DNA of 64,000 nucleotides from Fimbriosthenelais zetlandica (GCA_977030845.1 OZ365115.1:6572001-6636000), one strand, 5' to 3'; positions 1-46,723 are shown, counted from the first letter of the stretch. Numbers and translations are program-made. Notes: generated by a model not told the origin, from the sequence alone.

Positions 1-21103
<21,103 letters not shown>

Positions 21104-21542: not shown

Positions 21543-22648
21543 TCATCTCTCGGCCTTGTAACTTGGCAGTCTATTTTCTATACTTCCCCGATCTGCGAGA
21601 GGCCAAACCTGAAGTGTAGATTATTCAACAGCTTAATTGAGAACAGGGGAATCCTTAAGCCTCTCCGAATAATGTCAATCCCCCATCACAGTTTACAAGT
21701 CATTGAAATGTAACAATGCAAATGTTTTACCTTATAAAATACTCGACTCCGGATGAGACCATATGGTACTGGGCCGTAGGTTCGAGAATCAGTGGAGTTA
21801 TACTCATTATCACCTTCTAACCATACGTGGCCTTTAGGGATCTGTCAGAAAAAAAGAAAGGAAAAATTAGTGAAGACAAAACAAAACCTGTTGGCAGTTG
21901 GATTTTTGAACCCAATATGAATTATTAGATTATATTAATTATGCCGAAGTAAGGTGAATAATATTTAGTATCGTAGCCATAATAGCCCAGGCATTGTGGA
22001 ATATCTAGAAACATTTCTCACGTATTTATAGGAGTAGTTTGGGGAGGGATGGGTTATGGGATCTCCCTCTAGTCCTGTTATTCGCTTGCAAAGGAAGTTC
22101 TCTGGATTCGTGGGCGAGCGGACTATCACAACATCACCTCTGAAATGAAATATTTTTTGTAATATCTATTTTCATTTTAAGATTTTTGATAATTTCAAGG
22201 AATGTGTCATTCTCTCCAGTGTTGCTTACCTGTCCACTTTCCTTTTCTGCACCGAGAAATGCTCAGTTAAGACTACATCATCTGAATATATAGTGGGTTG
22301 CATCGAGGGACCTGAGCACTGAAAATTTAAACAGATGAATATTGATGATTTTACAATAAATTATGCATATTTTAGAATTTAAGACACATTATGAGAGATA
22401 TTTTAGGAGACCTCGGGTATAGCTGTATGGTATAGACTAATAGATGTTGAATGTAAGCTACCTTATCTAGTTTACACCTAAGCAGATCATACCCTAGTAG
22501 TGATTTATGATTATAGTGATTTATTATAGGCTATTGCACTTACCACTACAAAATCTCCAATGAATTCAAGTGTGCAGTGAGCAATACAGCCATACTGAAC
22601 CACGACTGCGCCAAAACCCAAAACCTTTCCTAAAGCTTTTCGAAACAT
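21543..22648 (-). CDS. IMMP1L: Mitochondrial inner membrane protease subunit 1 (IMP1), 162 aa, 5 coding exons
   Basis: Exons 22648-22544, 22318-22230, 22139-22022, 21841-21731 and 21608-21543 have canonical GT-AG junctions and total 489 nt. Protein: [55 protein letters not shown]...[27 protein letters not shown]...[41 protein letters not shown]... The S26 Ser-Lys dyad (GPSM, CKR) is intact. AATAAA on the minus strand at ~21380-21385. Absent from the ORF track. Confidence 0.97.
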
Positions 22649-23037
22649 CTTCTGAAAATTACAGGAGGTACGGTATCACATTTCGACCAATTAAACAGTT
22701 AACAAGTAGACCGTATATTATAGAGCGTTTAGTTCATGATCATCAGAGGGTTCATAAACAAGAGAATTATATTAAAGGGATGTTAAGCACTATGCTTTAA
22801 GTAATTTCCCTGTAGATTTTCTATAGTAATCCGTGTAATACGATTAGCCCCATAGCCTAAGCCATAGTCATACTGCCCATAGAAATAGCATTGTTATCAT
22901 TGAACGCTTCCAACAAACTTGTCATTATTTGCAATTTACACCCATATGTGCAACTGACAACCAAACAAGATCGTGGCGAACATACAACTGAACTAATAAG
23001 TCCAAAAAATGCCCCTTTCATACACGTTAACACTCAC

Positions 23038-23100
23038 GAGCGTAGAAATAAGAAAATCTGTTAGCCTCAAATCGCCCTTAGCGCTCCCTTGGCCGCCATG
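23038..23100 (-). other. IMMP1L: Putative non-coding first exon of IMMP1L
   Basis: Minus-strand donor GTGAGT at 23037-23032 and acceptor TTTCAG before 22651. A YY1-like ATGGCGGC lies at 23099-23092. The TSS is approximate. Confidence 0.55.
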
Positions 23101-23270
23101 ACAGTTTCCCAGGGTTCAAGGTCGCGGGTTCAAGGCCAATCAGAGATAGGGTTACATGCCACATGGCCAAACCCCCACACGGCCACGTTGACAAGATCCT
23201 ATTGGTTGATGCTGGGCACGTGACGCTATTCTCGCACTCTCATTGGTCGAGCAGCCGGCGAAGGTACTCT
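23090..23270. promoter_or_regulatory. Bidirectional promoter between IMMP1L (-) and calumenin (+)
   Basis: GC-rich island with CCAAT boxes at 23136 (+), 23201 (-) and 23242 (-), E-box CACGTG at 23217-23222, CCACGT at 23183 and a YY1-like motif at ~23092. Flanked by divergent non-coding first exons (donors at 23037 minus and 23299 plus). Confidence 0.7.
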
Positions 23271-23298
23271 TGGAGCGACCGATCGTCAGCATACATAG
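23260..23298 (+). other. CALU: Putative non-coding first exon of calumenin
   Basis: Strong donor AG|GTGAGT at 23298/23299; the next acceptor CTGCAG precedes the ATG at 24431. The start is approximate. Confidence 0.55.
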
Positions 23299-24430
23299 GT
23301 GAGTAGTGAGAGATTCTGTTCAATGTCTAAACAATACAGCCTTTGTGTTCACTCGATTGTTGTACCTACCGTGCCCAGGTGTTATTTTGTGACTAACGAG
23401 TTGATCGAGACAGAGATTTAAGGTAATATCATTGGTTTCATATCTTTGATTTGCTTGGATGTGCAGTGATTGGGTACAGTTCCACTGCCAGCTTCTCGCG
23501 GTTGCAGTTTGGTTGCAGGGGTAAGCCCCCTCATCCCACTCAGCCTCTGACTCTTCAGATATTTCCGCTTGCTTACCTTCTCATTTCTGAAGCTTAATGA
23601 ATTTGGTACCCTGGTAATATAGTAAGAATGCATGCGGTTAACTTGGACGACAGATTCTTTTACTGTTTGAAACTGTCCCCCAGATCTTTACATTTATTTT
23701 CTTATTCTCAACACTGACACTGTCTGTCTGGCTCTGACCTTAGAAAAAGAAGTGCCAAACATTTTCACCGCCCCCGGCCTCCCTTGGTACTTGCTATAGG
23801 TGGTAACGTCAGCATCATACTCCCCTGTGTCGACGTGTCACTGTTTTTGTTATTCGCCAAACGTGTATAATTCATTCCCTTTCATTAATGCATTTGTGAT
23901 ATCTAGGGATCTCTTTCCATATTCGTAATCTATTGTGCAATCATGCATAGCTGCATATTGAATGGTTGATTGCTTCTAAAGTTATCCCTAGATCTACCCA
24001 GTTCAACTTCAAGGTCCCTATTGTCTGATAAATTCTTAATTGAAAAGCTTTTCTGTAGTAAATGGGTGGTATAGGCCTCTAGGCTACGGTATCTATAATG
24101 GTTGAAATAAAATGGGCCTAAGGAATATTATCTAGGCTACTCAAGTACAGCCAAAAGTTTTTATTTAAAATAACCAAATAAAGTAAAAAAAAAAATGTGT
24201 AAAAATGACAATATTTCATTTATAAAAAAAAGTTGAGATTATTTCAATGCGCTACGAATAGACCTACACTCTAGCACCAAAATCAAAAGATCAGAAATGT
24301 GAAAAAACAAGTGCGTTTGTAACATAGAAACTAAGTATTGACATTATTGTTTGACATAAAAATTTCATGTTATTTCCTGCATGCCCTGTGTCCATGGATT
24401 ATCAACAGAAAGTTAATTTTGATCCTGCAG

Positions 24431-27400
24431 ATGTTCCAGCACAGATCAATCATGAAGGTGTACGTGATGGCAGTGGTGCTAGGCCTGGCAGCCACCTCCC
24501 TCTCCGTGGCCATCCCTAAACCTGGCGAGGCTGACGACCAGAAAAACAGAGTCGTTGACAGGGTAGGTAACTCTGTGTATTCATATAGCCTACATTTATA
24601 TGGAATTTGAAAAGCGGTAATTGTAATAGAAAGGGAATGGGAAAACAAGGAAGATAAATGGACAAAAAATAGGCCTAATCACGAACAAGGATTGAATTTA
24701 GTATAAGATTTAATAATTTTTATTCCTTTGCAGGAACTTAGTGATCAGAAACATTATGATGATTTAGAGCATAACCCCGAGTACGATCATGAGGCCTTCC
24801 TGGGTCGTGAAGAGGCCAGAAGATTCGAGGATCTTAGCCCTGAACAAAGTAAAGATAAACTAGGGTAAGAAGAGTTAATCTCGGTCTCTTATTTTTGTTT
24901 TTTAATTAAAATTAAATTTATATAATCAATATAATGCCTTTGATTTATGTCCGAGGAGAAATTGATTAAGAGTAGCGCATTATCACGTAAAATGTAATTA
25001 TAAAATTGATCAGTAAACTTTGTGTTCTCACTGTGACGTATTTCATGATCTTTCAGAATTATATATGATAAAATCGACAATGACAAAGATGGAGGAGTCA
25101 CACAGGACGAATTACAAAATTGGATAAAATATGTACAAAATAAATACATTCACGAAGATACAGAGAGACAGTGGAAGGAACATACGGTAGATGATGGCAA
25201 ATTAGCATGGGATTCCTACAAGTCACGAACGTACGGAAATATAGATGGTGAGTGCGTGATTTTAAAAAGAATGCGGGAAAAATTAATTCTAGACACCAAT
25301 TTTGGTTAGGTCACAAACTCTTATTTGACTACTTATTGATTTGTGAGGGATTTTTATTTGACCTAATGTCTTCAAATAGAAAAATATAAACGAGAGTATA
25401 ATAATATAAATGTATTTTAGTATGTTATCTAAGATTGAGAAAGGCACAGAATAACGAGATATATTAAGTATCTATAGAGATGGCCAGAATAATTAATTGT
25501 ATTAATATTTTGTGTTACAGAGACAGGCGATGAGGACGAGTATAATTATAAAGACATGATCAGACGTGATAAGCGGCGGTGGGAGAAGGCGGACAGTGAC
25601 GGTGATGATAAATTGACACAGGAGGAGTTTGCTCTCTTCCTTCATCCTGAAGAGTCGGAGAGCATGAGGGACATCGTCGTCGAGGTGAGAACATTATCCT
25701 GATCAAATTTATCAGTATTTATTTTGTAGTTGTTAAATATATTTATATTGCTAAAATATTTTGTATTCAATTGAAATATTTTGTATATATTAGAAGTTAT
25801 AACTGTTAAATATTATTTCCACAGGAAACGCTTGAGGATATTGACAAAGATAAAGATGGAGTAATCAGCTTGGAAGAATACATAGGTAAGTCTGCTATGA
25901 CTGTTCAAATTAGGAATTGCCGGCAAATATAATACAATATATAGTGTTTGTTTTAAAAACAAAACTGCGTAGTATTAAATAATGAAATGTCTTCGCTGCA
26001 GATGAAGTGGCTGGTAGTATTCTATATATGCTAACAATTTTTAAAAGTTCAAGTATTTCAAATTGTTCGTTCTTATTCCAATTTCAGCCTTTTACGTCTA
26101 CCTAACATTTTACTAATTAGTTCGATCTGATTTGTTGATTAATTGAATTATCTTGGGAATTGTCTCCAAATGGCATTAAAACATGATTTCGTCACAACAT
26201 GTCTCTACTAAATCCAACAGCAGTTAGTAAAGTGTGGAAATATACACTTAAACTTCTTAATAATCAATGAACTGTTTTATCAAATAATCTAGTTAAGATA
26301 TTGTCCTATTCTCTGATACTTTTGGATAACATTAATAGTCCTTTCCCAGGTTAGTCTATAATGAGAAAAAATAAGGGTAGATGTAGTAAGTATAAATGAA
26401 CTTTCATTTGGTTATCAAGGGGTACCTGCTTTTTGCATTGCCACTTTCCGTGTACCAGAATTTTGTATAAATATCTCTCCGCTCGTTGCTGCCCATTAAG
26501 GTGACATGTACCCAGGAGCAGATGAAGATGAAGAAGAGGAACAACCAGACTGGGTACACACAGAACGCGACCAGTTCATGACCGTCCGCGACAAGGACGG
26601 CGACGGCTTCCTAGATCACAAAGAGATAGCCGAGTGGATTATACCTGATGATTATGATCATGTTCACGCTGAGAGTGAACATCTCTTTAATGAAGCTGAT
26701 GTTGATAAGGTCTGTTTAGCTCGTTTACTGTCCTGATCGGGTTGGTGGGGGGTGGGGGATATTGCACAAGGATGGTTGTATGGCAAGGCTATAGGCTGAC
26801 TCAACATTGCAGAGCTTTCCTTCCCTTTTCAGAACTCCTGGATTACCCCCGCTCTCTTTTTTTCTGATTGCTTTGGGACTTTTCTTTTCCAGAGAAATGG
26901 AAGAACTTAGTTGTCTTGTCTAATGTCTATCTACCTTACGTTATTTTCCTTAGCTGGATTTAGTTGTGTTCATTGACACCTATAATTTAAGTTTCCCAAG
27001 TCTTTGTTGGCCTTGTTACTATCAAGTTCAGCAATGGCACTATTTTGTGTGGAGTTCTGTATAACCACTTGACGTATAGTAGTACATGTACAGATTTTTC
27101 TCCAATCCACTAATCATGTATTGCACCAAAAGTGAGCGACCAACAATCCTTCTTCCGATTTTAGCTCTCCTAGCCAGAGCTATCGGTCAGAACATGATTC
27201 TCTATTTTCATAATTCCTCTAGACATTGCCTCAGTATCTCAGGCCTGTCACCCAGGTCTCAAGTTCCAGATGTCAATTAACACAACTAAAATAAGACAAG
27301 GAAAACCTCCAAAATAAAACCATTCCTGAAATATTCAGCTGTCTGAGGATGGAGTCTGCCGGCTGACGAATCCTCCCTCAATCACCCAGTCTGAAACGGA

Positions 27401-28730
27401 GGGCACTGACCAGGCAAACGATCGAGGCCACCCACCCTGAGTCTATCTAGAATGACTTATCCACCCTTTGTGTTTGTGCTAGGTGATATGTGGCCAAACA
27501 GGGACACAGAGGACAATGAGCCTGACTGGGTGAAAACAGAACGCGACCAGTTCTCAACCTTCCGTGACAAAAACAAGGACGGTAAAATGGACCGTGAAGA
27601 GGTGGCTGACTGGATCTTACCGTCCGACTATGATCATTCAGAAGCCGAGGCTCGCCATCTTATGCTAGAATCAGATGTGGATAGGGTAGGTACCCAGGGA
27701 CAGCTGGAACCTGTATAGAAGCAGGAGAAAGTTGAGTTAACTGGGTATGGATTAACAACTTACACAAAACCCAACTAAAGACTGGATGTCCAGAATGTGG
27801 CTTCTTGCCAGAGTAGATCCTGATAACATGTGGTTATGTTATTCAGCATGCTTGTGTATTATATGTTTGGCTTGTAGATGATGCACGGTTTAGATTTGGT
27901 TTGTTACTATAGGGAATCTGCACCTACTCACTCTGCATAATTATCTCAGTATAAGTGTCCCTCCCATTCCACAATTTACACAAGTACTAATACATTGTGC
28001 TTCACATATGATATGCTAATGATATATATCTGTGACTTGTATCTATTTTAAAATCAACCATCCAACCATACTCCCTGGTTGGCGACTAGCCCAAGTTCAT
28101 CTATTAATTTCTCCTCTTATCCTCACTCATATCTCATCAGTTTTTATGTTCTTGTACAGGCTTCCAACATGGCATGGCGGCTGACTGATCTAATGGCTTT
28201 TAGGCTCCAGTGGATCCGATCTGTGCTCTTTATTTCTGCCTTTGATTGCTTGTAGATTATCACTGCTAACTCATATCACTGCATCTAATGTTGAGTCGAT
28301 GTATATAGCTCACATCTGCCATACAACTGGTTCTTGGGGACAATATATCTTTCTTTTTATATCAGTCGCCTTATATATGCTATGCGACACTTTTTATTTC
28401 TTGATATTTTAGAAATGATAATTTTTATATTAAATGGTTTGATGGATCTTCTGCTGTAAAGGCTCGGTACTTGCTAAAATCTTAAATAGTAACTGGTATG
28501 AAACATACTGAAGCATTTAGATGCTTGTGAACATAGCTTTAATATTTTGGGGATATGTTAAATGCATGGAACCCTTGGTATCATTGTTAATTGAAATTTA
28601 AAGGCCGGTATATTTCTTTTTGCAGGACGGTGTATTAACAAAAGAGGAGGTGGTAGAAAAGTATGATCTTTTTGTCGGTAGTCAAGCGACAGACTTTGGT
28701 GAGGCCCTTTCACGGCATGACGAGTTCTAA
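24431..28730 (+). CDS. CALU: Calumenin/reticulocalbin (CREC family) multi-EF-hand ER protein
   Basis: Exons 24431-24562 (signal peptide [20 protein letters not shown]), 24734-24864 (YDHEAFLG), 25057-25247, 25521-25684, 25825-25885, then 26501-26709 or 27483-27685, then 28626-28730. It ends [21 protein letters not shown], the calumenin-type HDEF retention signal. First AATAAA I found downstream is at 30748-30753. Confidence 0.96.
26501..26709 (+). CDS. CALU: Calumenin alternative exon 7a ([42 protein letters not shown]...ADVDK)
   Basis: Acceptor TTAAG|GT and donor AAG|GTCTGT; 209 nt; phase 1 in, phase 0 out; homologous to exon 7b. Confidence 0.85.
27483..27685 (+). CDS. CALU: Calumenin alternative exon 7b ([40 protein letters not shown]...SDVDR)
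   Basis: Acceptor GCTAG|GT and donor AGG|GTAGGT; 203 nt; same phases as 7a; closer to vertebrate calumenin as I recall it ([21 protein letters not shown]). Confidence 0.9.
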
Positions 28731-31218: not shown

Positions 31219-34000
31219 TTAATCAAATACATCTGGACCGAACATTTCTTCGATCTCATCTTCCAAAGTTTTACGGAATGAATCGGATGGGGGTCGGGTG
31301 GGGTGGTAGGTATGTTTGGAGCGGGGGTGCCGCGCAGCACCGGGGCGGATGGGCCTATCGTCCATGCTGGCAGTGGGGCGAGGGGCAGGAGGCGGTGCCT
31401 TTATAAACAATAATACATTTAACTAACTATGAATTCCTTTATCTTTTAATTCATATTGTCTCTAGTTCCTCTTTTCCATCTTTGGGTTGTAATTATGTAA
31501 TTGTATGATCTTATATTAATTTACGATGAAATGATTGGTGTGAGTTGGAGATTTAGCAGGAAAGCAGAGAAAGGTAACTCACATCTGGTGGGTAGGACAC
31601 CCGTTTGTTCTGCACTGCAATCCGCAACTCTTCAAGAGCTGCTTCCCGCTCGTCCGCATCTGGAGCAGTCGACCTCTGGATAAAGCCCCAGATCTGCACC
31701 TAAAAAATCAAACAAAAAATATTAAATATCATATAAAGTCGACTGATTTTCATAACATAAAAAGAAGTATTTTTATTTAAATGATTTATATTTATTATCT
31801 AGTACAAAGGGTAAATGAGGTTTGATTTTGACTGACCTGTTCTTGATGTGTGTTCTGGAGCTTCATTTTTTCCTCCTGGGCCGCAAGAGCTGCAGCTCTC
31901 AATTCAAGGCTGCGCTCTTCCTTCAGTTCCAGTTTGCGCGCCATCTCCTGCAGGGTCAGGGGAGCCTCTCTCACACGAGATTGAACGTGAGAAAGGTCAA
32001 TTCCTCCTGCAGCAGCTGATGTGCAACCCACACGAGACTGACATCTGGTGTTATAACCGTCAGGTGTCAGTAAAGTGCTGTAGACGTTGATGAAGTCAGA
32101 TGGCATGGCGCTCCGGCTCAGGGTGCGGGTCTCCGATCTATCATCAAGGCGAGAGCTGAAAAAATACATTTCATTAATTAATCTTCTCTTCTTCAATTGA
32201 TATCAAACATATATAAGTCAATAGCGAGTGTCCATTTGTGGGAGACCAGTTGCCATTAAAATAATTAGGAAACCAGCTGTGGGCACACAAAGGATTGCAC
32301 ATCTCACACAGCGTTTACATGCCTCTCACCGCATTGGAGGCATGGCTGTCATTTGATAATACAGTAAACTGCAATGGGGGAAGAATCTGCAGCACAATGA
32401 CAAATGTGGAGAATGCTTGAGGCATTGAGCTTACAAATACTCTAACTCTGAGCCATTTAACTAAATAATGAAGTTAGTACGATGTGTATACCGTGCTCTG
32501 GCCTCGACGCAGGCATCATACGAGGCAGCAGCCTGACTGGGGGCCTCCAGGGCGGCAGAAGATCCACAACGATCCACTATTTCCCATTTTACTGCTTTGG
32601 GCTTGATGACTGCGCTGGCCGTCATCTTAAGCTCAGCCTCCTTAAGGATGCTGCGTCCTTCGATGATGTGTTCGATCCTCTTCAGATCCTCCTTTATACG
32701 CCTGGCCTCACGCTTACCTGCACCATACAAGTCTTACTTATTGTCTGCATATCTGTTAATTTTTATAATTAATTATATTAAATTCTAATAGTAATAAATT
32801 GCCCTTTTCACATTCCTATGAATACATTTTTTAATTATATAGGCCTAGTAGTGTAAAGAATTTCAAATCTAATGAAGAATGCGTACATTATTATAAATAC
32901 CCGGTACTGTAAGTTAATTGATATGTGAAGTAGCCTATACATTAGTAAAACTTAGTAATATAATAATAGTTTTAAATAAAAGCAAACACTTTTAACTAAC
33001 TGGCAAATTGTACTTCAATTCTAACAGTAACATCGATACATAATATGACATTGACAACTCTAAAGTGTTCTTCCATTAGCCATTTCCAATCATGTCTAAG
33101 TAATACAAATCTTACATGACTTACCTGTCTGATTAGGCCTACCAGTATATTAGAACTATTTAATTACGGTAAACTTATACAAGAATATGGTACCTACTTG
33201 AGGTTTTCCATGTGCTATCAGCAGTTCTACTAGACCTAGAGTCTATCTGCTATTTTTATTTTAAAACTCAACAAGATTAATATGTGAAAATACACTCAAA
33301 AATACAAGTTAAAGAGAAGACGGGGAAAAATATTATAGATCTAGAGTCTAGTTCACAATTTTAAATTAGATAAAACATTTTTAAAAGTCTATTCATCTGC
33401 AAAAATAGATCTACCAATAAATGGAAGGACTCAATAACAACAAGACTTACTTAATGGTTTCTGTCCACTACCAATGGGTGGCAGTGGATCCTGGGTAGAC
33501 GTAGCCTTCTTCACCTCAGCGGGTGGGGGCGACTGTGGAGGGGTCGGTGGAAGAGTAACATCATCATCATCCATGACCATAGACGGTGCTGGGGTGGGGG
33601 CCGGGGTCTCCATCTTCCCAATCTCGTCATCTGTCTTCTGTTCATTCTCTGTCTTCTCCTTCTCTCTCTTCGCTTTCTCTTTCTTATCCTTCTCTATCTT
33701 CTCCTTCTCTTTCCTCTTCTCCTCCTTCTCCTTTTTCTTTCTCTTCTTCTCTTTCCACTTCTCTCTTCGTCTTATCAACTTTCTGAAAAGTCCTCCAAGG
33801 CTGCAGCCTGTCTGACTATCTTCCTCGTCATCTGAGGGTAGGTCGTTATTTCGGCGGTCCGCATTCCGTTTTCCGGCCGAATGCATAACTTTATCCAATT
33901 TATTTTCTTTCTCTTCAAGAGAAAGGCAAGCTTTGGGGTCAGGCCCGCTTTTTGGGGCATTTGTATCCCCTCTACGAAAGGGGTTCTTGAAGAACCCCAT
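31219..34000 (-). CDS. Orphan 463-aa protein, 5 exons, with a Lys/Glu-rich tract, a Pro-rich segment and a stathmin-like helix
   Basis: Exons 34000-33451, 32717-32492, 32155-31837, 31699-31583 and 31398-31219 have phase-compatible GT-AG junctions (1,2,0,0) and total 1392 nt with no internal stop. TATATAAA at 34207-34200; minus-strand AATAAA at 30844-30839. The exon 2 acceptor is the weakest junction. Confidence 0.75.
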
Positions 34001-34199
34001 CGTAGAGCGATTGAGCTTTTTTGTACGTCCAACCTATCAGCTGATCAAAGTCTCAATGAAAGGGCTTCCTTAGGAACGCTCCTAGCAACACTTCACAACG
34101 GAAGTAGCCCTATCCGTGACGACATGTACGGTGTCCCAAAATGGTGATTTGAAGGAACTTAGGAAGGTGGCCAGAAAATAAAAAAGTTAAAAGTCTCTG

Positions 34200-39122: not shown

Positions 39123-41261
39123 ATGACTGCATCTGTCACAATGGAACCCTGGTATGACGTCACGCCTGGGATGACTAATGACTTGATGAATGGTACGCTT
39201 GGGGAGCAAATCAGGAGAGAACTCAAGTTCTGGATACCACCTATCAGCTTCATTCTAGGAATAATTGGTAGGTTTCCCCAGAGAAGGAATCTATACTTTG
39301 TATGCCATAAGCGTATAATATCATACCTATTTGACTTAATAGTTAAACTGTCTAAGCTTGGTTTCCGATATTTAAAAAGTCATATGTTTAAGTGCGCACA
39401 TACTACGATATATGCAGGGTACAAACACATTTAGTTTTACATTGTGGTAATACATGTACTGTACTAGTAACGTCTGTTCATTGGATGTCCATTAGAAAAG
39501 TTATATTATCAAAAGTTTATTTCCACTTTAGTATGTTTACCTGCCGAAAATGGAAACTCAATTTGAGACCAGTGTTGACCCTGTCAGTAATACGAACTCT
39601 GACATCCGGGACTTCTTCTCTGACACCTGGCTAAGCTGAGGTGTTATGTTCCCATCCCAGCTCAGTGTCCTTTCCAAGCCGGAAATTGAGACTCCTCCAG
39701 CCCACATTACTGGGAGAATTCTTGAAAATAATGCTCATACATTTCTATTCGGTCGCGTTTAGAAGTTATCTGTTTGCTAACCAATCGGAAAATGCTAGTA
39801 TAGTATACAATTACCACAAGGGACGAAGATTTGGAATATCTACAATTGCCTGACTGGTTGTTGAACAGCTTTCTTCAGTACCACTACCAGTATTTGAATA
39901 GAAAAATAGGACATCCCTTGATTCCAGAACCTGCAAGAATATCTTATGGGGAAATTGAAACTCTGAGACAAAACTAGGACGAGAATAGCATGTTTTCTGA
40001 AACCAGTCATTAAAATGTGTGGCAGAGGATACAATTACTGAAAAATGTCATGTATATTTTACTATGTTCTCAGGGCTTTCTTAGATAGGCTATATATAGG
40101 TTAGATGTTTCTTCATGTCGGGTGCTTCACATGATATAAAACTCCAGAAAGTAGTGGCTGATGAAACTTTGAAACTGATGCATTCTTCTCTCATTTTCAG
40201 GTAACTCTCTCTGTCTTGCAGTCACGTGTTCTTCCAGGTCTATCCTGTCTGCTCCTACAAAAATCTATATGACGGTGATATTTATTATGTGTGACATCCA
40301 TTTGACAGCTGCTGTCATTGCCTGGCTGCCAACATCCTTCATAGACTATGTCAACCTGCCACAGGTCGTCTTCCTGCGATCAGCAATCATCAGTGACCTG
40401 GGCTGCCAACTTTTGGCCTTCTTTCGTTCAGCCTCAATTTTTGTACTTTCCTGGATAATGGTGGCGCAAACAGGAGAAAGATACTCCATTCTATCAAGAC
40501 CCTTCACACAAAACAAGAATCCCATTCGGTTAGCCTCTTTGGTGTGCTTGGCCATATTCTTTATCGGTTTTGGTGTGGAAACAACAAAATTCTTTGGAGT
40601 TTTTGCTGCACCTGCCAACAGTACTATTCCCGGAGAAAGATTGAGATGTGAGCTGAATGATTTGGGAAATGTGGTAAAGTTAGTGGATGTGCTCATCATC
40701 TATCTCCTCGCTCCCATTTTCTTGTTTGTTCTGTCCCTCTGCTTGTGCTGCATGGTCAGTTTGCATAACAGCCTTCTGAAGAAATGGAGATATAAAAAGT
40801 CCAGCTTACCAATCAGCGATCACAAATCTGCATTGTCATTGACCATGGCATTCGTCTATTCCTTTGGACTTTTGCCTTATTTCATCTGGTCGTTGCTAGT
40901 TCTTATTTCCCTGATCTGGGGGGAGGATAGCAGCATTGATGATATTGCTGCATACTTTGAGGAAGGTGCCACACTGCTGGTTGTCCTAATTTCAGGCCTC
41001 AATATTATATACCTCATCATTGCTGGAAAGAGTTATAGGTCACTTCTCTGCAATGTTATGTGTGGATGCTTTTGCAAAGACAACCTGGACATGCGAAGTG
41101 AAGGGGAGTCTCTGAGTCCAAGCATGTCTAATGGGACAAGTAGTGACTATGCTAATGGACATATCCCATCCAAAATGGACAAAAGTGAAGAAGAATTGAA
41201 TCATGGACAGATCAACATGGGTTTTGATGACCATGACAATACAGAAACGACACCATTATGA
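39123..41261 (+). CDS. Divergent rhodopsin-like (class A) GPCR, peptide-receptor-like orphan, 401 aa, 2 coding exons
   Basis: Exons 39123-39267 and 40201-41261 join in phase 1 (GII-G|N-SLCL). Seven hydrophobic segments with TM1 GN, TM2 D, TM3 Cys and ERY, an ECL2 Cys, TM5 P and TM6 LP; N-glycosylation sequon NGT in the N-terminus. Confidence 0.88.
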
Positions 41262-41961
41262 TTTGTTTATGATACATTATATTAGACAATGCTCCAAGTT
41301 TTGACTTATATATGAATATATATATACTTTCATGAAACTGGAAGGGACAGAGGTTTATTTTCAGCTTTTACACAAAAATATTGGGAACTTAGGTTATTTA
41401 GTCATCTGTCAAAATAAGAAATTAATTAATTTAATTATAAATGTGCCATGAAGTTATTATACTTTTGCCACATAGCCTTTAGTATAATGGGCCTACATAC
41501 ATTCTATGAATTCCATGTATACATTTCATGAGTTATATAATGTAAGTCATGAACTGAGAGGTGGGGGTGATTGACAGGCCTGTACATGATCCAAGTACAA
41601 TAATCCCTAACCCTATGGGCTTTAACACAGTTTGGTATGTTAAAGCACTTATTATACAACAAGCGGCTACTTGCTCCAAGTTAATCAAAGCTGCCATGCT
41701 CGAACTTGGTTTCGTGAAAGTAAATTTTATGAAACCTAAGTAAAGTTACACAGACATAATCCTGGCGACTGGAAAGGCGTGTGAACCTGTGGAAGCTAAC
41801 AGGTGTGACAACTAAATCGCATTGTTTATTTGAACAATACTGGACACCTGTATATATACAGCAAATACAGAGTAGTTGTACTATTGATTATATATCATAC
41901 TGGAGTATGTACAACAGCCTCAATTTATAAGTCATTATTGCATTCAGTAGGATATAATATA

Positions 41962-42993
41962 ATGGAAAAAGAAGACGACAAGTTTGCCTTTCAATGCCCC
42001 AGCAGTTGCAGTCTCAGGAAGGTGATTTCCTTGTATTTAATCTCAGTTTCTTTGGTGGTTATGCATGGCTGCTTGGAAGCTGTTGAAGATTATTGGTATT
42101 TGGAGGAACCATCACAGTCTGGGATGTTCAACTGGACTTTATGGTATAGAACCGATGAACAACTAGCCCGATACTGTACCAACAACTTCGAGCAAATAAG
42201 ATTTCCCCCTGGAGGTAGTCGAGTCTGCCAGAAAGACCAAGGTGAATATATTAGGAAGATTTCCAAAAATTTCCCACAAAGGTTGACCTCAAGTGACAGC
42301 GATTGTGAACGGACGATGACCTTGTATGCAGCCTATGTGGAAGAAACACCCGGAACATCTGAAATATCATTAAGGATTTCAGCGATTATGAAGTCCAAAG
42401 AGCTGGGTTACATACTGGACAGGACCTACTGCCAAGTACTGCTCCCTGGTAGGAGACAGCCACTGGTCTCTTTAGCAATAGGTTGGCCTTTACAGAAAAA
42501 GTCCTCTTCTATTTACAGCACAGTTGTGTTCCAATGCCAGACGAAAATACCAATAATTGACACAGAAATGCCAGCTTTTGTGTCTCTTACCAAAGAACCA
42601 TGTGAAGATCCTCAAAATGCTCTCCCTTTCGCACCTTTTATTCCTAAAAAAGTAGAAAAGACAGAAACATTTTGCATTAAGTATGATGGAACTAGTTATT
42701 CCATAGATTCTCTGGGTAAAACTGTCAAGAAAATGTCCAACAAATTCTCCGAAGAAAGACTTATAATTTATGATGGTTCTAAAAGTGGAAGTGCCTGGAA
42801 AGTACTTAATAATGCAATGAAATCTGCGAGAAGTAGGATATGGATACGTGGGAATCAGTGGACACGGGCTTTGGCATCGGTTGTTTCTGCTCGTGAGAGC
42901 CCCGAGGCCCTCAATGGTATCAGTCGCCAGGTGGACCTACTATACATACATGACTGCCACATTCGAGCCCGAGGAAAGTTTCTGGAACAGTGA
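41962..42993 (+). CDS. Intronless type II membrane protein resembling glycosyltransferase family 92 (DUF23), C-terminally truncated, 343 aa
   Basis: N-terminal TM (VISLYLISVSLVVM), then a motif series recalling GT92: LYAAY..LRI..YCQ..YS.VVFQC..P.FVSL...C..P.N.L..FC..IIYD..VL..W..HDC..R. The stop falls where the Y..xDxDE motif would follow. AATAAA at ~43305. The family call is from memory, not a search. Confidence 0.55.
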   Translation: MEKEDDKFAFQCPSSCSLRKVISLYLISVSLVVMHGCLEAVEDYWYLEEPSQSGMFNWTLWYRTDEQLARYCTNNFEQIRFPPGGSRVCQKDQGEYIRKISKNFPQRLTSSDSDCERTMTLYAAYVEETPGTSEISLRISAIMKSKELGYILDRTYCQVLLPGRRQPLVSLAIGWPLQKKSSSIYSTVVFQCQTKIPIIDTEMPAFVSLTKEPCEDPQNALPFAPFIPKKVEKTETFCIKYDGTSYSIDSLGKTVKKMSNKFSEERLIIYDGSKSGSAWKVLNNAMKSARSRIWIRGNQWTRALASVVSARESPEALNGISRQVDLLYIHDCHIRARGKFLEQ

Positions 42994-43696: not shown

Positions 43697-44377
43697 GTAA
43701 ACAAAGAACAACATGTATTTCTTTATCAGAGTTAAAGATCATGCCCTGACATGGGTAGGGAAGGTTATGTCCATATAGGTTTACTGGCCTTCACGACCCT
43801 AATATCACCAAAACACTCAAAGAAAGACCATCTTCCCCCTGAATGACATAAGGATTTAAAGTCAAGTAAATCCCTTCTTTTATGCAGAATACTTGATGCT
43901 AGTACAGGGCAGTTCTGAACATACATCTAGTCCATACTCTGTGGTACTCAAAGATCTCTTCGACTATTGTTACTATAGCATCTTGTTTGCTTTAGTCATT
44001 GAAGATACACCAAGATGAAAAAGATAGTCACGTGATTATTAGATAGAACTCATGGTTTCGATCAATATTATAATATACATTTATTCTTAGGAATCAGTTG
44101 CTAACAATAACAGACTGGGCAGAGTTTCAATCTGGGTATGATGGGAAAGGGAAGTGAATTTATTTGGAGAAGTCAAATCATTTAGCTTCATTGGATTAAG
44201 CAGTGGGGAAATTTCATGGAAGATTATATTTCTGGAAGTATTCTCGAGATGTTTATAAACTAGTATAAGTGATACCCTGTGAGTGTGATTGAAGGACCTT
44301 TACTGTCACAGGAACATCTTTTTTTCATCTTGGACACTTATTTTATTAGATGCATAACATTGTTGGGTGAGCACAAA

Positions 44378-46723
44378 ATGGACCAGTATAAATGTTCACA
44401 TTGTGAGAAGGTATTTACCACAGCAACACCTCTTAAAAAGCATCTTTTAGTACATACTGACTACAAAGCTATAGAATGTCCACTCTGCGATAAGCGCTTC
44501 AAAGAACAGGGAGCCATGGGGCGGCACTATCGCAGTAGGCACACCAATGAACGTCCTTACTTGTGTGCTGTATGCAACAAAGGCTTCCCCGCAGCAGTCA
44601 ATTTGAAAATCCACTTGCGTTCCCATAGTGGGGAAAGGCCCTATTGCTGTGACCATTGTGAGAGCCGATTCACCACTCTGAGTGGCTTGAAAGCTCACAT
44701 TCGCTCACATACTGGGGAAAGACCGTATCCCTGCAAAATATGTGGGAAGCGATTCCTGCAAACAGGGCATCTTGCTGTGCATCTTCGTAGACATAGTAAC
44801 ATTCGCCCCTTCAAATGTGACTATGAAGGTTGTGATAAAGCCTTTAATAGTAGAAATGCTCTTAAGAATCATCTGAGCTACCATTCCAGTCTTAGACCAT
44901 ATACTTGCGACTTGTGTGATAAGGCGTTCAAATGTCAGAGTGATTTAACTAAACACAAACGTACTCATTCTGATATGCGGCCATACGTATGTTCTACATG
45001 TGGTCGCTCCTACAAACATGTTAATGGTCTTCGGGTGCACCTCCGCACACACAGCTTGGAGCGTCCGTACAAATGTGACAAATGTAACAGAACATTTGCT
45101 CAGTCCAGTACACTAAAAGTCCATCAACGTGTGCATAGTGATGAACGCCCTTATCCCTGTGGGACTTGTGGCAAGCGGTTCAAAGACAAAGGTCATCTAG
45201 AGAAGCATACGCTCATTCATGAAAATATCAAACCATTTCAGTGCCCAACTTGTGGCAAGAGATTCCGTCAGACCAGTACCCTTGTTCGTCATCAAAGTTC
45301 GCATAGTCAGACTCGCAACTTTGTATGCGCCATATGCAGCCATGCATTCATGCAGCAAGGGCATCTTAAAGCCCATATGCGAGTACATACTGGAGAGCGC
45401 AACTACACCTGCTCCACATGTGGCAAGTCTTTCTTACACAGTGGAGACTTAAAAAGGCACAGTATGATTCATACCAAAGAGAAAGCATTTAAGTGCACTC
45501 TCTGTGGAAAGTGCTGGAGACTAAAATCAGAACTGAAAATGCATATGATCTCTCACAAAACAGAGCGAAGCATACCATGTGGAACTTGTGGGAAACACTT
45601 CAAAGATGGCAGCCATCTGAAGAAGCATTTGAAGATTCATACTAGTATTCGCCCTTACAAGTGTGTATTGTGTTCTGCTAAATTCATGTGTCAGAGAGAT
45701 TTAACTCGACATCAACACACTCATGCTGGAGTCAAGCCCTACAACTGTAAATTCTGTGATCAGGCATTTGTACAACCGGGACAAGTGAAGAGTCATATAC
45801 GTGTACATATGAGGGAAAGTCGAATACACAAGACAGCAGAAGGGCATGGCGATGATTTGAAGAGTGAGAATCATGATATGACAAAGATGAACAAGGAGCA
45901 TAATTATCTATTTGAAACAGATGTTTCACCCAAGAGACAGACTGAATCTGAAGGAAGTGACAAACAAATGGATGGTACAGTTATAGGTTCTGAAACTTGT
46001 GAAAAAGAAGTCAAAACTCGTTCTGGCAGTGATACAGTGACTCAGCAAGATGAACAAAGTCAACACCACTTTGTAAAGGACAGTGATGAGACTTACATGG
46101 TCTCTCAAGAAGGCATTCATCAAGGATTGTGTATCAAGGAACGTCCTGGTCAGACCCAGTACCATGAAAGTATGAATGATGAAAGTAGTAAAGATACTGG
46201 TCCACTGCCCCCGCACAATCCGTCATACACTTACAAGGGAGATGAAGAAATTGTTCAAGTTGTTGGACAAGGTTGCCAGACTAAACTGGAAAGATGCACC
46301 GACAATTCTGAACGTCAATCAACAGAAAGTCTTAACATTGATGAGAAGACTTCTCAACAGCCATGCTTGAGCACCAGGAATAATCTTTCATTTAAGGGAC
46401 ATCCCCTGAAGAAATATGGAAAACTGAATCATGATAATAGTTTTCCTTTATTCAACTGTAGGAACCATGGATTTACAAAGTACAACCCTGGCAGATTGCG
46501 TCCTGAATTAAATGGCCAATCTCATGGTACAGAAAAAAAGAGACCAGAGAAGATATTGGATTTGGATGACAATGTTCCTCTTAACCTTAGTGTTCATCGT
46601 AGAAATGCCCTGACATATTGTAAGACAGTTCCCAGTGGGGTTAAACAGGATATTTCGCAAACTTCTGATTATGCGCTGGACTTGAGATTAATTCACAGGG
46701 ATGGATATAAGCTATCAGACTAA
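44378..46723 (+). CDS. C2H2 zinc-finger protein, 781 aa, 17 tandem fingers plus an acidic/disordered C-terminus with PLNLS and ALDLR motifs
   Basis: I counted 17 C-x2/4-C-x12-H-x3/4-H units with TGERPY-type linkers in one uninterrupted exon. First ATG after the acceptor uORF is at 44378. Confidence 0.93.
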   Translation: MDQYKCSHCEKVFTTATPLKKHLLVHTDYKAIECPLCDKRFKEQGAMGRHYRSRHTNERPYLCAVCNKGFPAAVNLKIHLRSHSGERPYCCDHCESRFTTLSGLKAHIRSHTGERPYPCKICGKRFLQTGHLAVHLRRHSNIRPFKCDYEGCDKAFNSRNALKNHLSYHSSLRPYTCDLCDKAFKCQSDLTKHKRTHSDMRPYVCSTCGRSYKHVNGLRVHLRTHSLERPYKCDKCNRTFAQSSTLKVHQRVHSDERPYPCGTCGKRFKDKGHLEKHTLIHENIKPFQCPTCGKRFRQTSTLVRHQSSHSQTRNFVCAICSHAFMQQGHLKAHMRVHTGERNYTCSTCGKSFLHSGDLKRHSMIHTKEKAFKCTLCGKCWRLKSELKMHMISHKTERSIPCGTCGKHFKDGSHLKKHLKIHTSIRPYKCVLCSAKFMCQRDLTRHQHTHAGVKPYNCKFCDQAFVQPGQVKSHIRVHMRESRIHKTAEGHGDDLKSENHDMTKMNKEHNYLFETDVSPKRQTESEGSDKQMDGTVIGSETCEKEVKTRSGSDTVTQQDEQSQHHFVKDSDETYMVSQEGIHQGLCIKERPGQTQYHESMNDESSKDTGPLPPHNPSYTYKGDEEIVQVVGQGCQTKLERCTDNSERQSTESLNIDEKTSQQPCLSTRNNLSFKGHPLKKYGKLNHDNSFPLFNCRNHGFTKYNPGRLRPELNGQSHGTEKKRPEKILDLDDNVPLNLSVHRRNALTYCKTVPSGVKQDISQTSDYALDLRLIHRDGYKLSD

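Follow-up and report, generated by a model that had tools for sequence, protein, structure and literature searches.

A divergent IMMP1L-calumenin/reticulocalbin gene pair in a probable annelid and a limpet, and its relation to the vertebrate PAX6 neighbourhood

PAX6 synteny is a textbook genomic regulatory block, with neighbours such as ELP4 thought to have been kept for the PAX6 enhancers that they carry. On human 11p13, to which NAT10, CSTF3 and CAT also belong, PAX6 is on the minus strand and RCN1, a gene of the CREC family, on the plus strand. A further gene of this neighbourhood, IMMP1L, encodes subunit 1 of the inner-mitochondrial-membrane signal peptidase (IMP1-type, MEROPS S26). The gnathostome Pax6.1 locus has the order Eif3m, Wt1, Rcn1, Pax6, Elp4, Immp1l, Dnajc24, Dcdc1, and Pax6.2 adjoins Rcn3 and Nosip, with Fbxo47 also present in the elephant shark contig (PMC3554528). 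Vertebrates share the grouping Eif3m-Rcn1/Calu-alpha-Pax6-Elp4-Immp1l (PMC3554528, PMC6925180), Pax6-beta occurs together with Calu-beta and Fbxo47, and in lamprey and elephant shark Fbxo47 lies between the Calu/Rcn3 gene and a Pax6 paralogue (PMC6925180). Since paralogous Pax6 loci have these neighbours, the pre-duplication vertebrate locus already joined a CREC gene, FBXO47, Pax6, ELP4 and EIF3M. Human IMMP1L and ELP4 form a divergent pair of their own, 128 bp apart and among the most conserved divergent human pairs. Of 64 species compared, nine vertebrates and a single fungus had this pair and no invertebrate did; divergent pairs with closely spaced or overlapping promoters are, in general, hard to separate (PMC2871058). 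Here we describe a head-to-head pair of IMMP1L and a CREC gene in a 64,000-nucleotide stretch of the Fimbriosthenelais zetlandica genome (G000:C25:6572001-6636000; hereafter the window), and examine how it relates to the vertebrate PAX6 neighbourhood.

In the window, IMMP1L (minus strand, 21543-22648) and a calumenin/reticulocalbin-type CREC gene (plus strand, 24452-28730) diverge head-to-head, both intact, with complete open frames and canonical splice sites; the limits given in the original prediction, 21543 and 28730, are exactly the stop codons of the two genes. We consider it probable that this divergent pair was inherited at least from the annelid-mollusc ancestor, and that it sits inside a larger and older linkage block that matches the vertebrate PAX6-paralogue neighbourhood. 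The pair, the orthology of its members and the company that it keeps on its contig are taken in turn below.

According to our splice model, IMMP1L has five coding exons separated by GT-AG introns and a 162-aa product. Exons 3 and 4 match Peptidase_S26 (PF10502), and the spliced product carries both motifs of the dyad: GPSM..PT with the serine and CKR..GLEGD with the lysine, residues which, from knowledge of the family, we take to be catalytic. IMMP1L is single-copy in the assembly; the one other S26 gene, at C10:16.55 Mb, has no significant tblastn match to it and is taken as a putative IMMP2L-type gene. A family-library search with exon 4 returned only 'S26' as a label, and every named match to the corresponding Lottia exon query is IMMP1L; as judged by sequence comparison, the window gene is nearer IMMP1L than its paralogue IMMP2L.

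The CREC gene has eight exons and encodes products of 323 or 321 aa, depending on which of two alternative exons is used: exons 7a (209 nt) and 7b (203 nt) would break the frame if joined and are taken as alternatives. EF-hand Pfam matches fall on four of the exons, six D-x-D-x-DG-type loops can be counted by eye, the C-terminus is HDEF, and the N-terminus is hydrophobic and signal-like by composition (a putative signal peptide); the predicted product is thus a six-EF-hand protein of the endoplasmic reticulum (ER) lumen. An extra in-frame ATG at 24431, right at the acceptor and seven codons upstream of the ATG at 24452, is an alternative candidate for the start codon. Tandem matches of the 7a/7b type are also present in Capitella (L020:11626-11784 and 11900-12118), Ridgeia (L021:19343-19462 and 19867-20088) and Lottia (L022:14531-14698 and 14755-14964), and the tandem exon pair therefore predates the window lineage. 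Two further peculiarities of CREC genes were seen in other species. In Branchiostoma floridae (L019:11107-11826) the beginning of the EF-hand-1 exon (window protein residues 83-117) recurs as five partial copies, mostly ~170 bp apart and ahead of the complete exon; they form either a tandem repeat or an alternative-exon array. In Lingula anatina (L018:10001-19624) CREC exons one to three are duplicated together with the promoter module described below; the two copies are ~6 kb apart, an SCNM1-like gene is nested in the interval, and the 480-aa protein of the annotation looks as if it resulted from fusion across the duplication or from an assembly artefact.

A phmmer search with exon 7b against 1.84 billion representatives returned 271 calumenin-type library proteins at E<=1e-10. 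The 7b isoform shares 57-59% identity with full-length vertebrate calumenins, 56% with reticulocalbin-1 and 60-66% with lophotrochozoan 'calumenin-like' proteins; its 73.5% identity to the Capitella protein is inflated, because the latter is partial and lacks the divergent N-terminus. In a maximum-likelihood tree of 40 CREC sequences, the window protein is sister to Capitella (94/48), groups with Ridgeia (91/97) and is nested in a starred clade of lophotrochozoans (98/98). Another starred clade (98/96) unites vertebrate CALU with RCN1 and leaves every invertebrate sequence outside, which is what co-orthology, as proposed originally, requires, and the tree supports vertebrate CALU and RCN1 being jointly co-orthologous to the window gene. 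The outgroups, two divergent paralogues from the same genome, have very long branches (2.5-4.8; one fell inside the echinoderms), and the root is therefore unreliable. These paralogues, at C25:7810554-7811259 (1.2 Mb from the window) and C10:53446898-53448588 (2.7 Mb from ELP4), are only 24-46% identical in matched pieces, and by own-genome search the window gene is the single calumenin/RCN1/RCN3-type gene in the assembly; the three genes fit three old CREC lineages. The family-library labels for the two paralogues are generic (EF-hand or calumenin) and name neither as RCN2 or SDF4, and the PDB holds no CREC structure.

We surveyed the pair from the CREC side, taking the CREC orthologue and 10 kb on either side of it from nine further species and tabulating eight invertebrates; IMMP1L was sought by listed Pfam families and by tblastn with the window protein (Asterias amurensis by listed families alone). 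The pair is present in the mollusc Lottia gigantea, where an S26 gene (L022:6319-8292, minus) and CREC (10001-16049, plus) show the same divergence with ~1.7 kb between annotated ends, and the IMMP1L exons are 49-63% identical to those in the window (best E 8e-18). Two phyla thus have these orthologues next to each other in the same orientation. In a further species, Gigantopelta, IMMP1L and CREC are each listed on a contig of 84,917,595 bp. That the window pair is an artefact, with a mis-assembly joining the genes or one of them a pseudogene, is very improbable: the window contains no N, both genes have complete frames and canonical splice sites, each is the sole copy of its kind in the assembly, and the independent Lottia assembly has the same pair.

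Might the adjacency have arisen independently in the window lineage and in Lottia, by unconstrained local shuffling of genes that were already near each other? The outer neighbours do differ (dynein on one side and an unnamed gene on the other in the window; choline kinase and a VCPIP1-like OTU gene in Lottia), alignment of the intergenic DNA of the two species is no better than that of shuffled controls, and the pair is missing in two other annelids, a brachiopod and a nemertean. However, the same two single-copy genes would have had to meet twice among ~20,000, in the same divergent orientation and with gaps of 1.8 and ~1.7 kb, which is very unlikely unless they were already very close; we therefore regard independent origin as improbable, and common inheritance of the pair as the better account.

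The surroundings of the pair on its contig, C25 (37.93 Mb, or 8.5% of a 447-Mb assembly in 79 contigs), extend the likeness to the vertebrate loci. The pair lies at 6.594-6.601 Mb, with EIF3M (recognised by its PCI domain and eIF3m C-terminal helix) at 5.873-5.875 Mb, FBXO47 at 6.036 Mb and NOSIP at 8.74 Mb, i.e. 0.72, 0.56 and 2.1 Mb from CREC; EIF3M, FBXO47 and IMMP1L are all within 0.73 Mb of it. Of the two genes whose location the original prediction proposed to establish, Pax6 is on the same contig as the pair, 20.3 Mb off, and ELP4 is on another. The Pax6-type paired domain is at C25:26,930,471-26,930,830 (plus strand; its best PDB match is human PAX6 with 246.6 bits, as compared to 205.6 for PAX5), and Pax6-type homeodomain exons are at C25:26,967,866-26,970,303. 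At the Pax6 loci of vertebrates, EIF3M, FBXO47, NOSIP and Pax6 are found on the flanks of CREC paralogues. Of ten markers, four are on C25 against 0.85 expected (binomial P ~0.007), a count that, like the distances, is indicative only, since the choice of markers was made post hoc, from papers and from what is known of 11p13. The likeness does not extend to a broad 11p13 macrosynteny, which we considered and rejected: NAT10 is on C13, zf-CSL genes (DPH3/DNAJC24) are on C11 and C37, and CSTF3, CAT and CPT1 are all on C27, so that only the genes nearest PAX6 correspond; for the portion of human 11p13 distal to PAX6, the counterpart appears to be on a different contig than that of the PAX6-proximal genes. 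On C27, catalase (21526616-21529424) and CPT1 (21910296-21910436) are 0.38 Mb apart, with CSTF3 at 2.79 Mb.

The DNA between the two genes was thought at first to hold one promoter of ~200 bp. That figure was not confirmed: the ATGs are 1803 bp apart, no open reading frame with a family match lies between them (22649-24451), and splice signals together with a conserved module suggest a gap of 50-600 bp between the transcription starts. A good splice acceptor stands directly before each ATG exon, making non-coding first exons likely. The sole G+C-richer part of the spacer (0.52-0.55) sits between candidate donors at 23033-23038 (minus) and 23299 (plus) and holds CCAAT at 23136, ATTGG at 23201 and 23242, and CACGTG at 23217; a motif scan found no TATA box near the putative starts. 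The putative IMMP1L 5' leader also contains a 10-codon upstream open reading frame (ATGGCGGCC...TGA) in good start context (window 23068-23100, minus strand).

The composite ATTGG-N(10-30)-CACGTG-N(10-30)-ATTGG has one match in the window, as compared to 0.03 expected; Lingula, Lottia and Tubulanus have it too, 5' of CREC and on the same strand as that gene. Furthermore, CCACG-N13-ATTGG recurs with the same spacing 5' of CREC in four species, namely the window species (23183-23205), Lingula, Capitella and Tubulanus, and nowhere else in the loci compared (0.085 expected per 64 kb); the 11-mer CCACGTTGACA is common to the window, Lingula and Capitella. A splice donor follows the last ATTGG by 50-75 bp in the window, Lingula, Tubulanus and Lottia. 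A further module match inside the amphioxus gene (L019:12410-12466) lies in an ATTGG-rich tandem repeat and was taken as chance, and reading the module as a canonical ER stress response element (ERSE) or ERSE-II was rejected on account of its spacing and orientation. As the module is present also where IMMP1L is absent, it belongs to CREC; followed as it is in the window by the donor at 23299, it would put the CREC start near 23250. The IMMP1L start would then lie to the left of the module, between ~22660 and 23200, which makes a divergent promoter likely, its starts separated by 50-600 bp, as far as sequence features can tell.

Several observations weigh against common inheritance of the pair within an older block. 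Six of the ten markers are off C25, and the choice of markers after the fact, mentioned above, tells in the same direction. ELP4, a compact 2.5-kb gene, is on another contig (C10:56,147,930-56,150,434). IMMP1L was not found within 10 kb of CREC in the annelids Capitella teleta and Ridgeia piscesae, the brachiopod Lingula anatina, the nemertean Tubulanus polymorphus, the echinoderm Holothuria leucospilota or the cephalochordate Branchiostoma floridae, and no S26 gene is listed within 10 kb of CREC in the echinoderm Asterias amurensis: in the kind of survey that the original prediction proposed, the two genes are not adjacent at this scale in seven of the eight invertebrates, including two annelids and three deuterostomes. 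Common inheritance would then require at least four independent break-ups within Lophotrochozoa. The CREC module without IMMP1L alongside in other species is no proof of a shared promoter, the transcription starts are placed from splice signals and the module, and the intergenic DNA, as noted, does not align between the window and Lottia. Finally, that the window genome is an annelid one is itself probable rather than certain, coming from a single-gene tree.

The deuterostomes bear on a stronger proposal, that head-to-head IMMP1L and CREC were the ancestral bilaterian state, with FBXO47, PAX6 and ELP4 arriving between them later and ELP4 becoming the new divergent partner of IMMP1L in the chordate or deuterostome line. 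IMMP1L (minus) does lie 5' of CREC (plus) with the same relative order and orientation in the window, in Lottia and in human. ELP4 in the window genome is, besides being compact and on another contig, arranged head-to-head across a ~1-kb gap with a gene whose predicted product resembles leucine-rich-repeat proteins (no Pfam match; locus C10:56146438-56150434) and not with IMMP1L. The vertebrate and fungal, and not invertebrate, occurrence of the IMMP1L-ELP4 pair (PMC2871058) would fit as well. Yet the IMMP1L-CREC adjacency is found in none of the three invertebrate deuterostomes, and in the starfish Asterias amurensis (L025:1-18906) it is FBXO47 (minus) that is the divergent 5' neighbour of CREC (plus), as in lamprey and elephant shark, where Fbxo47 is beside Calu/Rcn3 (PMC6925180). 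CREC-FBXO47 linkage consequently looks deuterostome-wide and is at least as good a candidate for an old adjacency, and the IMMP1L-CREC arrangement may be a lophotrochozoan one within an older block rather than the bilaterian state. We consider the stronger proposal unlikely.

By lineage, the adjacencies known are thus IMMP1L with CREC in the annelid and the limpet, FBXO47 with CREC in the starfish, CREC, FBXO47 and Pax6 in early vertebrates, and IMMP1L with ELP4 in vertebrates. Direct adjacency of IMMP1L and CREC was seen in Lophotrochozoa only, in two phyla, and none was found within 10 kb in Branchiostoma, Holothuria or Asterias; adjacency in the bilaterian ancestor is possible but unsupported. 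Linkage is another matter: the Lottia pair, the sharing of C25 and the orthology together indicate that IMMP1L-CREC linkage is probably of bilaterian age and older than the vertebrates. The cluster of EIF3M, FBXO47, IMMP1L and CREC, together with the starfish FBXO47-CREC arrangement, makes the relation to the vertebrate PAX6 neighbourhood more than the echo that it was first taken for, and most simply the two regions are remnants of one old linkage block. The initial idea of an ancestral IMMP1L-CREC linkage accordingly stands in part: it is favoured by the limpet pair, by the common contig with Pax6, EIF3M, FBXO47 and NOSIP and by the tree, and is at odds with the missing adjacency in seven of eight species and with the place of ELP4. 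A version that has EIF3M, CREC, FBXO47 and IMMP1L already linked in the ancestral bilaterian, a single divergent promoter serving both IMMP1L and CREC, and PAX6 and ELP4 joining the block in the chordate line seems to us doubtful.

How inheritance of the pair may have worked can be sketched. IMMP1L and CREC are a real divergent pair of housekeeping genes, and probably no more than a few hundred bases separate their starts, at ~23040-23300, where the DNA lacks a TATA box and has CCAAT boxes and a CACGTG E-box. The stretch 23183-23246 is an old CREC promoter module, with IMMP1L most likely starting just behind it and perhaps using the same NF-Y-type boxes in the opposite direction. The pair may have been kept because closely spaced or overlapping promoters resist separation, and the head-to-head arrangement would have been broken up independently in several lineages. 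The larger block would consist of EIF3M, FBXO47, IMMP1L and CREC within 0.73 Mb, of NOSIP at 2.1 Mb, and of Pax6 on the same chromosome.

The finding is ordinary in kind and modest, since conservation is well known both for head-to-head pairs and for ancestral linkage groups; our literature search found no paper that joins IMMP1L with microsynteny, or IMMP1L with calumenin. Its interest lies in the absence of Pax6 from the cluster: in a probable annelid, four of the genes that adjoin Pax6 loci in vertebrates still form a cluster to which Pax6 does not belong, suggesting that the neighbourhood partly predates the regulatory landscape. If the doubtful version with a linked block in the bilaterian ancestor were true, the block persists without Pax6 at its side (here 20 Mb off), and the vertebrate linkage would be older than, and independent of, the long-range regulatory landscape of PAX6. 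EIF3M, FBXO47, IMMP1L and CREC make a concrete gene set for a chromosome-level survey, and the conserved CREC promoter module adds a small element of invertebrate cis-regulation that lends itself to testing.

Beyond the pair and the dynein gene listed in Table 1, the window holds a lysine-/glutamate-rich gene without Pfam match (31798-34033, minus), a 360-aa open reading frame with many hydrophobic stretches (40179-41258, plus) and one of 394 aa (41809-42990, plus), both also without Pfam match, and a single-exon C2H2 zinc-finger gene of 782 aa (44375-46720, plus).

Table 1. Coordinates of the features of the IMMP1L/CREC locus (window positions unless a locus is named)
Feature	Position	Strand	Basis
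Dynein heavy chain gene, 3' part	1-21103	+	DHC_N2 5238-5687, Dynein_C 20687-21100
IMMP1L exon 5 and stop	21543-21608	-	AG acceptor; frame closes at TGA 21543
IMMP1L exon 4 (GHVWLEGDN...NSTDSR...YGPVPY)	21731-21841	-	Peptidase_S26 E 4.8e-7, profile positions 130-163; 63% identity to Lottia exon
IMMP1L exon 3, motif with presumed catalytic Lys	22022-22139	-	Pfam Peptidase_S26 E 1.9e-4; GT-AG borders
IMMP1L exon 2, CSGPSMQPT, presumed catalytic Ser	22230-22318	-	Splice model; aligns with proteins named IMMP1L
IMMP1L coding exon 1, ATG at 22648	22544-22648	-	Acceptor ttttcag directly before AAGATG
Putative non-coding first exon of IMMP1L	23039-23135, 5' end tentative	-	GTGAGT donor 23033-23038; sequence only
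CCAAT box (CCAATCAG), IMMP1L side of core promoter	23136-23140	+	Motif scan
Conserved CREC promoter module, CCACG-N13-ATTGG-N11-CACGTG-N19-ATTGG	23183-23246	+	Motif scan, comparison across species
Module copies, Lingula	L018:9016-9078, 15085-15147	CREC strand	
Module copy, Capitella (first half only)	L020:7903-7945	CREC strand	
Module copy, Tubulanus	L023:8553-8619	CREC strand	
Module copy, Lottia (other spacing)	L022:9148-9193	CREC strand	
Putative non-coding CREC exon 1	23250-23299, 5' end approximate	+	Donor catag/gtgagt at 23299; sequence only
CREC first coding exon	24431-24562 (ATG 24452)	+	Acceptor cctgcag at 24430; hydrophobic, signal-like N-terminus
CREC coding exon 2	24734-24864	+	Splice model; matches CREC query in own-genome search
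CREC coding exon 3, EF-hand 1	25057-25247	+	Pfam EF-hand_6 E 4.3e-4
CREC coding exon 4, EF-hand	25521-25684	+	Pfam EF-hand_7 E 3e-4
CREC coding exon 5, EF-hand	25825-25885	+	Splice model
CREC alternative exon 7a, 209 nt	26501-26709	+	Pfam EF-hand_1
CREC alternative exon 7b, 203 nt, version nearest vertebrate calumenin	27483-27685	+	Splice model; phmmer
CREC last exon, HDEF then stop	28626-28730	+	83-87% identity to last exon of Capitella, Lingula, Ridgeia, amphioxus

The locus can be set beside four known systems. ERSE is CCAAT-N9-CCACG and ERSE-II is ATTGG-N-CCACG; like these, the CREC module joins NF-Y-type CCAAT boxes with CCACG/CACGTG 5' of the gene for an ER-resident protein, whereas its own arrangement is CCACG-N13-ATTGG followed by CACGTG, and the canonical N9 or N1 arrangement is absent. 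Divergent housekeeping pairs with CCAAT-rich, TATA-less promoters (e.g. HSPD1/HSPE1) are a second parallel, IMMP1L and CREC likewise being divergent with a short gap, clustered CCAAT boxes and no TATA box; they differ from such pairs in that IMMP1L acts in the mitochondrial inner membrane and CREC in the ER lumen, and we know of no functional link between their products. With the vertebrate PAX6 block the locus shares the proximity of CREC, IMMP1L, EIF3M and FBXO47, the presence of NOSIP and Pax6 on the same contig, and the position of IMMP1L, divergent, on the 5' side of CREC. It differs from that block in that Pax6 is far off and ELP4 on another contig, in that IMMP1L abuts CREC and EIF3M and FBXO47 lie on the 5' side, and in that no conserved non-coding Pax6 landscape is involved. 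Finally, as in the human IMMP1L-ELP4 pair, IMMP1L is here one half of a conserved head-to-head pair with a short gap, but in both the window and Lottia its partner is CREC rather than ELP4.

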